From NCBI GenBank assembly GCA_002269645.1, contig NIVC01002680.1, positions 1-42,067 on the forward strand: a DNA stretch of 42,067 bases. Direction: 5' to 3'. A program made the translations under genes and the position numbers. This document shows positions 8,986 through 11,247 of the stretch, piece after piece. Origin of the DNA: Macrostomum lignano. Taxonomy: Eukaryota. Every line of letters begins with the position of its first letter. Position 1 is the stretch's first letter. The notes below the pieces were generated by a model. That model made no database searches. It saw only the letters and a list, made by a program, of their open reading frames with translations, and had not been told where the DNA came from.

Positions 8986-9396
8986 ATGGCTCGCACCAAG
9001 CAAACAGCTAGGAAGTCCATGGGCGCCAAAGCGCCTCGTAAACGTCTGGCCACCAAGGCCGCTCGGAAAACCCCATTGGTAACTGGCGGAGTGAAGAAGC
9101 CGCACCGCTACCGCCCCGGCACTGTCGCCCTGCGTGAGATCCGTCGCTACCAGAAGAGCACGGAGCTGCTCATCCGCAAACTGCCATTCCAGCGGCTGGT
9201 TCGCGAGATCGCCCAGGACTTCAAGACCGACCTGCGCTTTCAATCGGCTGCCGTCGGCGCCCTGCAGGAGGCCAGCGAGGCCTACCTGGTTGGCCTGTTT
9301 GAGGACACGAACCTGTGCGCAATTCACGCCAAGCGGGTCACCATCATGCCTAAAGACATGCAGTTGGCTAGGCGCATCAGAGGCGAAAGGGCTTAG
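8986..9396 (+). CDS. Divergent histone H3 variant (H3.3-derived), intronless, 136 codons
   Basis: [35 protein letters not shown]...[11 protein letters not shown]...[15 protein letters not shown] is an intact ORF. The true start is the ATG at 8986; the 8947 start in the ORF track is an alternative codon. Confidence 0.95.
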
Positions 9397-10836
9397 GGCT
9401 CAAGATCGAAACGAGACAGGATGATAGTGTCCGAAAATGGACCTATATGACAATAACTGATACTGACTTTCCTCTCTAAATGTTGTAAAATTCCCTCTTC
9501 AAACTATTTGAAATACAGTGTAAAGCCTTCAATATAAGACTTTCATATCAGAACCGGTTTAGCTTCAATCAAAGTGCACGGATTCACGGTATTGCCCAAT
9601 ATGGTGCAATAATTTTGCACATTAATAAAAATTTACCGAAAAATGCCCTTACTACTACCCAAATAAGTAGTGTAATGTGGTTGTGCCAATTTTTGTGTCT
9701 TTAGAACCTAAAACAAAATAGAAACTTGTGTTAGACAAAGAGAACTTTTATTTCTTAGATATATGGAGCGATGGTTTAATGTAATTTAAGCGATAGATTA
9801 TAATGAAGATGCACTTAACTACCTCAGACATATAGTTGTGAAGTCAAATAGTTTAGCCTTTGCCTATGCACGGATCACGTCACTAGCAAGTCGAAATTCA
9901 CACAATGGGTGGGTACAATATCTTATCGCGACTATACTAAATGAGTGTAAAAATGCGCTTAATACTACACAAATAAGTAGTGTATTGAAGTTTTACGCCT
10001 TTTTAGATAAGACACAATCTAGATCACGGAGCCGGTAATCAAAACAACTTAAACCTATTTAAATGGTTTAGCTATTGCAAAACAAGGTGAGTCATTGTTT
10101 CACAATATTGTGCAATATTTTCAAGTACGATAAGATGAAAAATGTGTATAATTACCCAAATAAGTAGTGACATGAGATTTTCTGAGAATTTTTTACAATT
10201 CAGATCGAAATACTAAGCACAAAAAGAACTTCCTAATCACTAAAAGCTATTTTTGTTGAAATGAAAAACATTTGGTTAGAAACTAAATCAATAGTTTAGA
10301 ACGATTATAAAAACGAAAAAGAGCAGCCTAAACTATTTAGTTATTTTTAGTAACGTGTATTTTAAAATAAAATAGGTGTTTTTTAAACACAGTAGACAAT
10401 GATAATATATTAGACGATAATGCTAAGCAAATATTTTGATATTTAATGAATATTTTTAAGACAGAAGCTGCCAATAAATTGTGACTATATTTATTATAAT
10501 ACCTAACTAATTAGCGACAGAATTGTATTAAAAAATAACTCAATAAAAATAAACGAAGGAATTTCCCGGAATTCAATAAACCGTTAATTTTGGCTGAATA
10601 GTTAAACTTGTTCAAAACCAACAAGAGAACAGGATAGAGAGTTGAACTAACACGAACAGTCAATTGAAACATTATTAAACAATGGCAATATAGTACAAGA
10701 GATGCAGAACATGCTTGAATTTTTTTTAAATAGAGACCACAAGGAAAAACAGATTAAAATATTAGTTAAGAAGCGAGAATAAAAGAAACTTAGCGTCACA
10801 GAGCGCACTTGTCAAAAGCTGTGCAACTGAGCCTTT

Positions 10837-11247
10837 TTAGGCTCGCTCGCCTCGGATGCGCCTAGCCAGCTGGATATCCTTGGGCATGATGGTGACCCGC
10901 TTGGCGTGGATAGCGCACAGGTTCGTGTCCTCAAACAGGCCAACCAGGTAGGCCTCGCTGGCCTCCTGCAGGGCGCCAACGGCGGCCGATTGAAAGCGCA
11001 GGTCGGTCTTGAAGTCCTGGGCGATCTCGCGAACCAGCCGCTGGAATGGCAGCTTGCGGATGAGCAGCTCCGTGCTCTTCTGGTAGCGACGGATCTCGCG
11101 CAGGGCGACAGTGCCGGGGCGGTAGCGATGCGGCTTCTTCACTCCGCCAGTGCTGGGGGCGGACTTTCGGGCAGCTTTGGTGGCCAACTGCTTGCGCGGC
11201 GCTTTGCCTCCGGTGGATTTGCGAGCGGTTTGCTTGGTGCGAGCCAT
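10837..11247 (-). CDS. H3.3: Histone H3.3-type protein (S31, A87, G90; V89)
   Basis: Canonical H3 sequence with APSTGG and SAAVGALQE. No histone 3' stem-loop is seen. An acceptor-like TTCTCTTAACCCAG lies 1 nt before the ATG. Confidence 0.95.

Follow-up and report, generated by a model that had tools for sequence, protein, structure and literature searches.

Two histone H3 genes on one contig of the flatworm Macrostomum lignano are nearly identical through their central part and saturated with silent differences on either side of it, a mosaic that was probably produced by interlocus gene conversion between them. The window analyzed here spans all 42,067 bp of contig NIVC01002680.1 (assembly GCA_002269645.1). 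Gene A (8986–9396, forward strand) and gene B (10837–11247, reverse strand) are each an uninterrupted 136-codon H3 open reading frame (ORF) of 411 nt. They are intronless and convergent (tail-to-tail), with stop codons 1440 bp apart, and both match the core histone family over their full length (Pfam Histone PF00125; E values of 2e-46 for A and 1e-48 for B). Gene B encodes H3.3, and gene A is classed below as an H3.3-derived variant. Local alignment scores between the non-coding flanks of A and B, 5′ as well as 3′, do not exceed the mean of shuffled sequences, so the block of homology consists of the coding sequence (CDS) alone.

Divergence along the H3 pair

Codon-by-codon comparison divides the two genes into three parts. 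Positions 9004–9081 of A differ from B at 28 of 78 nt, positions 9082–9320 at 5 of 239 nt (every one synonymous), and positions 9321–9396 at 13 of 76 nt (11 synonymous changes, one stop codon difference, TAG/TAA, and one replacement, I124M). These values reproduce exactly the counts given in a preliminary description of the locus. Nei-Gojobori estimates of the proportion of synonymous differences (pS) and of synonymous (dS) and nonsynonymous (dN) divergence vary in the same way: residues 6–31 have a saturated pS of 0.775 with a dN of 0.23, residues 32–110 have a pS of 0.082, a dS of 0.087, and a dN of 0, and residues 111–135 have a pS of 0.60, a dS of 1.2, and a dN of 0.018.

The low-divergence tract covers at least codons 32–110, at 9082–9320 on the forward strand in A and 10913–11151 on the reverse strand in B, and possibly reaches position 9350 (codon 120) in A and 10883 in B. 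It was delimited by alignment, and independent repeat detection returned an inverted repeat with 95% identity between 9082–9395 and 10838–11151. All five differences within the tract are transitions, with no transversions, as expected of young differences, and they are spaced 24–69 nt apart. The diverged N-terminal-tail segment of A (codons 6–31, 9006–9081, forward strand; 11152–11227 in B) holds 28 differences and seven of the eight amino acid replacements between the genes. Among degenerate codons for the same amino acid in the N-terminal tail, 13 of 19 differ, and codons 28–31 contain a run of 11 mismatches in 13 nt. The diverged C-terminal segment of A (codons 121–136 including I124M and the stop, 9351–9396, forward strand; 10837–10882 in B) has 11 differences in 46 nt.

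The contrast between core and ends had been described as sharp. It is statistically robust, as shown in the next section, but its 3′ boundary is diffuse and not sharp at residue 110. Two extra differences, at 9321 and 9324, lie 5′ of the dense C-terminal divergence, which sets in again from codon 121. Just two differences occur in gene nt 271–365, so the tract may end anywhere within 9256–9350. Met124 is 7 nt inside the diverged end, and there is no sharp edge there.

At the other end of the gene, the first 20 nt of A and B are identical (8986–9005 and 11228–11247, including five of five degenerate codons; P roughly 0.03), and the next 76 nt are saturated. Codons in these first 20 nt are variable among the other H3.3 genes compared, and about 10 of the 15 nt 5′ of the ATG also match between A and B. 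This identity could represent a second short shared tract or a constraint on the context of the start codon.

Significance of the mosaic and silent-site controls

The mosaic is highly significant in each test applied. Degenerate codons for the same amino acid differ at 5 of 79 positions in the core and at 23 of 47 in the flanks (Fisher test, P = 4.7e-8). A two-breakpoint maximum chi-square test, in which permutation corrects for the choice of breakpoints, placed the best segment at residues 32–119, and none of 2000 permutations reached the observed value. The preliminary description had suggested GENECONV across the pair; a GENECONV-like fragment score computed on the 178 polymorphic sites of a 12-sequence alignment was reached in none of 10000 permutations, with the best fragment at gene nt 99–360 (9084–9345).

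Codon usage was used to ask how many mismatches independent evolution would leave in the core. With the codon usage of the B core alone, the null most favorable to codon bias, 19.7 of 79 codons are expected to mismatch, compared to 5 seen (P = 1.3e-6). The codon usage of the flanks predicts 34. In the flanks themselves, the 23 mismatches among 47 codons equal the expectation for random draws (about 0.49), which indicates that their silent sites are fully saturated.

Ten H3.3 genes that encode an identical protein in other assemblies served as controls; they come from other species rather than from other M. lignano copies. In no comparison among them does the core have a lower pS than the ends. 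Control pairs of intermediate divergence have pS values per segment of 0.52/0.49/0.44 and 0.51/0.55/0.51, and two copies located 24.6 Mb apart on one chromosome have values of 0.87/0.94/0.65. No second H3 was found within 10 kb of the control loci. Equally low core dS among unlinked H3 genes, the observation that would have spoken for a constraint on codons or RNA, is thus not seen in these ten genes. The codon-usage nulls and the controls agree that purifying selection alone is insufficient to produce the synonymous contrast, as had been proposed, and silent-site constraint or codon bias is not the cause of the core identity.

Gene conversion as the probable source

Interlocus gene conversion is recognized by an unbroken stretch in which paralogues are significantly less diverged than elsewhere in their shared homology, and A and B have such a tract. 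We consider conversion between these two neighboring inverted genes the probable explanation. The ectopic conversion of the core proposed earlier is retained to this extent: the mosaic is real and non-reciprocal exchange is its simplest cause, while the mechanism itself is one we infer. A and B would be old, tail-to-tail duplicates of a replication-independent histone H3.3 gene. Non-reciprocal homologous recombination between them would have erased all differences in the central 240–270 bp (codons 32 to about 110–120), and the five silent transitions would have been gained in the core afterward. The central block covers K36, the alpha-N helix, alpha-1, and most of alpha-2.

The direction of transfer was probably from B to A. 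GC content at third codon positions (GC3) in gene A is 0.84 in the core and 0.63 in the flanks (P = 0.009), compared to 0.85 and 0.75 in gene B (P = 0.19). The core of A thus has B-like, strongly GC-ending codons unlike those of its own ends, which suggests B as the donor.

M. lignano is a neopolyploid with three paralogous subgenome copies, and the CDS divergence of paralogues from its whole-genome duplication is roughly 1.1% (PMC10733133). The cores of A and B differ at about 2% of nucleotides, a value of the same order as, or above, that of these paralogues, so the last exchange was not recent. It may predate the genome duplication, and conversion between A and B does not look ongoing. Homologous recombination works poorly on saturated sequences such as the flanks, and the core is therefore more likely to have been kept similar by repeated events than to have been rescued by one; its homogeneity would have been upheld by recurrent conversion over a long time.

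Divergence at the ends

The ends may have escaped homogenization because conversion loses efficiency toward the limits of a homology block, and the run of mismatches at codons 28–31 would block heteroduplex extension. This escape may have been strengthened by selection for the variant tail. In the conversion-degeneration model, old duplicated blocks are expected to acquire a homogenized center between diverged edges under neutrality (Osada & Innan 2008, PMC2588116), and elevated edge divergence of converting blocks has been described in Drosophila duplicates (PMC2588116).

The window contains a second pair of paralogues whose divergence also follows this profile. These genes (31728–32903 and 40175–41425, both on the reverse strand) encode 391 and 416 amino acids, are in direct orientation about 7.3 kb apart, and matched no Pfam family. 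Their homology is limited to the CDS, with 94% identity over about 1185 nt. The first 50 codons have a pS of 0.44 and a proportion of nonsynonymous differences (pN) of 0.19. Codons 53–250 have a pS of 0–0.03, and codons 53–203 contain seven replacements and no silent changes. In codons 253–303 pS is 0.20, which completes a U-shaped profile like that of the H3 pair. Because an unrelated pair in the window has this shape, the pattern needs no rationale specific to histones.

The preliminary description held that conversion tracts stop short of the tail and of Met124, and that conversion would maintain the fit of the variant's core to H4 and chaperones. The replacements do fall in the diverged segments, but no design is needed to place them there, since neutral edges (PMC2588116) and the unrelated pair give the same picture. 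The compatibility argument is not needed. The C-terminal end is saturated yet has a single replacement (dN/dS about 0.015), and the B protein is identical in ten other assemblies, so protein-level selection alone preserves H3.

A fuller adaptive account would have A and B converting frequently, with alleles that lose the tail or Met124 purged and homogenization itself beneficial through a match to H4 and chaperones. Divergence peaks at selected sites are established theory, in which selection acts against conversion around functional sites, and they are seen in primate opsins (PMC3924837). All eight replacements fall in diverged sequence, seven of them in the tail and one at the C-terminal end, which agrees with such a process, as does the retention of AAVG (residues 87–90) inside the tract in both genes. 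We nevertheless regard this account as distinctly unlikely. The core is not identical, so conversion was neither frequent nor recent, and the C-terminal end has remained nearly unchanged at the protein level without it. H3.3 is protein-identical across distant assemblies, so no benefit of homogenization is required, and diverged edges arise neutrally and are present in the unrelated pair nearby. Selection that protects the tail is possible, but with two sequences it is inseparable from the edge effect, and an adaptive interpretation of the mosaic is unsupported.

Weighing conversion against other sources

Several points weigh against conversion between A and B as described above. The comparison is based on these two sequences, whereas the classical proof of conversion calls for paralogues that cluster by species inside the tract and by gene outside it. 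A single contrast in GC3 is the basis for the direction of transfer. The shared first 20 nt of A and B are not what a simple edge effect would leave. The donor could also have been a third H3.3 gene located elsewhere in the genome. Polishing of the assembly with multi-mapping DNA and RNA-seq reads is a real caveat.

A third-party donor would be another H3.3-type gene of the neopolyploid genome from which A, or A and B alike, received the core; in a variant of this idea, A would be a young copy of B with its ends overwritten by a divergent H3. Most loci in this genome have about three paralogous copies (PMC10733133), histone genes are usually multicopy, and the core is somewhat richer in GC3 than the flanks in both genes, although not significantly in B. 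Exchange with a neighbor at a distance of 1.4 kb is the more parsimonious origin, and proximity strongly favors conversion (PMC3966223). The ends of A have unique replacements, and no protein in a collection of 5.8 billion matches them better than canonical H3. No further H3-like sequence was found in the window beyond A and B. We consider a third-party donor improbable.

The shared core is very unlikely to be an assembly artifact, in which the core of A was overwritten in the Canu consensus or during Pilon polishing by reads of a presumably highly expressed B. The assembly was built with Canu from PacBio reads and polished using Pilon with multi-mapping Illumina DNA and RNA-seq reads (PMC5730564), and 93% of genomic read pairs multi-map in the M. 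lignano genome (PMC10733133). Both mosaics in the window are restricted to coding sequence, which speaks for such an artifact. Five differences survive in the core, however, and at their spacing most reads would tell A from B. From the way such tools work, reads from a B-type core would fail to align if the core of A were as divergent as its flanks (about 15% or more), and a homology of 240–410 bp would be short relative to long reads, which extend into the unique flanks as well.

The idea that codon bias or an RNA-level function froze the synonymous sites of the core in A and B independently has a high core GC3 and several amino acids with a single codon in the core to recommend it, but it is practically negligible given the excess of mismatches predicted by the core's own codon usage, the lack of a core-specific drop of pS in other H3.3 genes, and a region in which Rfam (at the gathering score and at E ≤ 10) gave only chance-level hits.

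Gene A as a putative H3.3-derived variant

Exact look-up found ten other assemblies that encode the B protein without a single change; from their accession series, these are presumably parasitic flatworms such as Schistosoma and Hymenolepis. It belongs to a cluster of 3732 members, of which those with names are H3.3 or H3.3A-like. Since B is the conserved protein, all eight replacements between the genes (T11M, G13A, Q19R, S28T, A29P, P30L, S31V, and I124M) are placed on the lineage of A. A double frameshift was considered as a source of the four consecutive replacements at 28–31, and no convincing register was found.

Residues 1–136 of A align to H3.3 chains in the PDB (E value of 5e-78), and the best matches among solved structures are H3.3. 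The chaperone-recognition patch at residues 87–90 reads A87-A88-V89-G90 in both genes, with three of the four positions of H3.3 type including G90 (A-A-I-G in H3.3, compared to S-A-V-M), and I89V also occurs in the protein of the ten other H3.3 loci. Ser31 is present in B and replaced by V31 in A, and for this reason A is classed as an H3.3-derived variant and not as H3.3. The 3′ histone stem-loop (RF00032) was absent from the window at the gathering score and from 8600–11700 at E ≤ 10, as for H3.3, whose mRNA is polyadenylated. All eleven H3.3 loci compared are intronless, so an origin of A by retroposition cannot be judged.

We searched for the product of gene A in public collections. Exact look-ups of it as 136 and as 149 amino acids returned no called gene. 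In the collection of 5.8 billion proteins, the full-length query found nothing closer than 94%, with matches saturated by ordinary H3, and a 52-residue query of the variant tail returned canonical H3 at 88% as its best match and no protein with the tail; M. lignano proteins seem to be absent from this collection, in which a query with exons of the neighboring Rcd1/CNOT9 gene had a best match of 80%. A degenerate DNA pattern for a 13-residue peptide had no match in JGI metagenome contigs.

The unconverted parts of A are under strong purifying selection (dN/dS below about 0.15 for the tail and about 0.015 for the C-terminus), and the ORF is intact. Judged from these features and from the CCAAT motifs upstream of it, A is probably alive, a functional-looking and lineage-specific H3.3 variant. 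It is conceivable, if on balance unlikely, that A is a functional paralogue restricted to a cell type such as the germline or neoblasts, that its altered K9–T11 (ARKSM) and K27–S31 (ARKTPLV) regions change the reading of K9/K27 methylation and S10/S28/S31 phosphorylation, and that selection holds these residues against recurrent conversion from the neighboring H3.3 gene. If the tail variant is held by selection in this way, the pair would amount to a natural "tail-swap" experiment, accessible to genetics in a flatworm model with transgenesis.

Other features of the contig

The spacer between the two stop codons (9397–10836) is 1440 bp long and AT-rich. Repeat-family detection and alignment identified three diverged copies of a repeat of about 56–130 nt in it, at 9639, 9949, and 10136 on the forward strand (span 9590–10227). 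The repeat core, CAAATAAGTAGTG, occurs three times, always in the spacer and nowhere else in the window, with 0.05 chance matches expected. The copies also share a small hairpin-like motif, and the third has a match to the C/D snoRNA snoR21 that is at chance level (25.7 bits, E value of 1.8).

Upstream of gene A, an inverted CCAAT motif (ATTGG, 8837–8841) and a direct CCAAT motif (8858–8862) were read from the sequence on the forward strand. They are located about 125–150 nt before the ATG and are candidate promoter elements. A 186-amino acid ORF (7711–8271, forward strand) lies 700 bp upstream of gene A. It has a gag-like (retroelement) stretch by eye and no Pfam match, and it may be a transposon remnant adjoining the variant gene.

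An Rcd1/CNOT9 gene is located at 1080–3860 on the forward strand. Its reconstructed exons (1080–1469, 2071–2610, and 3681–3860) are separated by GT-AG introns and encode a His/Gln-rich N-terminus, and intron 2 is filled by a minisatellite of 18–19 nt (2637–3523, about 49 copies). Tandem arrays also occur at the contig start (1–994, 33 copies of a 30-nt unit), at 4980–5436 (115 copies of CTGT), and at 26771–27581 (34 copies of a 23-nt unit). The last of these is within the span of a called gene of 340 amino acids (24736–28130), which has a weak CUE-domain match in its last exon. Strong strand asymmetry at 21001–23000 (GC skew of +0.43 to +0.70, AT skew of up to +0.42) indicates a purine-rich simple-sequence tract. 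A degenerate non-LTR retrotransposon with several broken ORFs (34986–38480, reverse strand) is present between the members of the second paralogue pair. It contains an RNase H domain (PF00075, E value of 1e-7, 34986–35522) and a weak reverse-transcriptase match (35911–36396), and has a GC content of 53%–59%, compared to about 35% around it.

Implications and comparison with known systems

The H3 pair is a compact textbook case, with saturated ends, a homogenized center, and the boundaries between them all inside a 411-bp gene. The process is known and the example fresh; it opens no new mechanism. Whole-gene dS of histone paralogues in M. lignano would badly misdate their duplications. For Macrostomum, the practical yield is a probably functional and unannotated H3.3-derived variant with an altered K27–S31 region, whose role and expression are directly testable in a species with working transgenesis.

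Lineage-specific H3.3-derived variants include his-69/his-70 of C. elegans, H3.5 and H3.Y of primates, and H3t of mammals. Gene A resembles these in being an additional H3.3-like gene with few replacements whose ORF is intact and under purifying selection, but its set of replacements is not known to match any of theirs. GC-biased gene conversion is reported to raise GC3 in converting histone paralogues (Galtier 2003, Trends Genet). The core of the H3 pair likewise has the highest GC3 in both genes (0.84–0.85). The excess is significant in A alone, however, and simple transfer from B to A explains it without biased repair.

In exon 5 of the primate red and green opsins (Innan; Teshima & Innan; PMC3924837), as in the H3 pair, replacements that define the products lie in high-divergence segments of a homogenized pair. 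Site function and ongoing conversion have been demonstrated for the opsins, whereas a neutral edge effect explains the H3 pattern equally well. The H3 replacements co-localize with diverged segments, but the edges of the block do too.

Conversion between adjacent inverted paralogues is documented for the hsp16 modules and for hsp70-7/-8 in C. elegans (PMC3966223). Those genes and the H3 pair are alike in being close copies in opposite orientation, with a tract of a few hundred base pairs far more similar than the surrounding homology. The H3 pair differs in that its homology block is the 411-bp CDS alone and in that its products are non-equivalent (H3.3 and a tail variant).

A comparable profile is that of the Drosophila Amy and Bob duplicates (PMC2588116), which have the same U-shaped divergence, homogenized center, diverged edges, and unalignable flanks. 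The Drosophila blocks measure kilobases. In the H3 pair the same profile is found inside one small and extremely conserved gene, so that the edges of the block are the N-terminal tail and the C-terminus of the histone.

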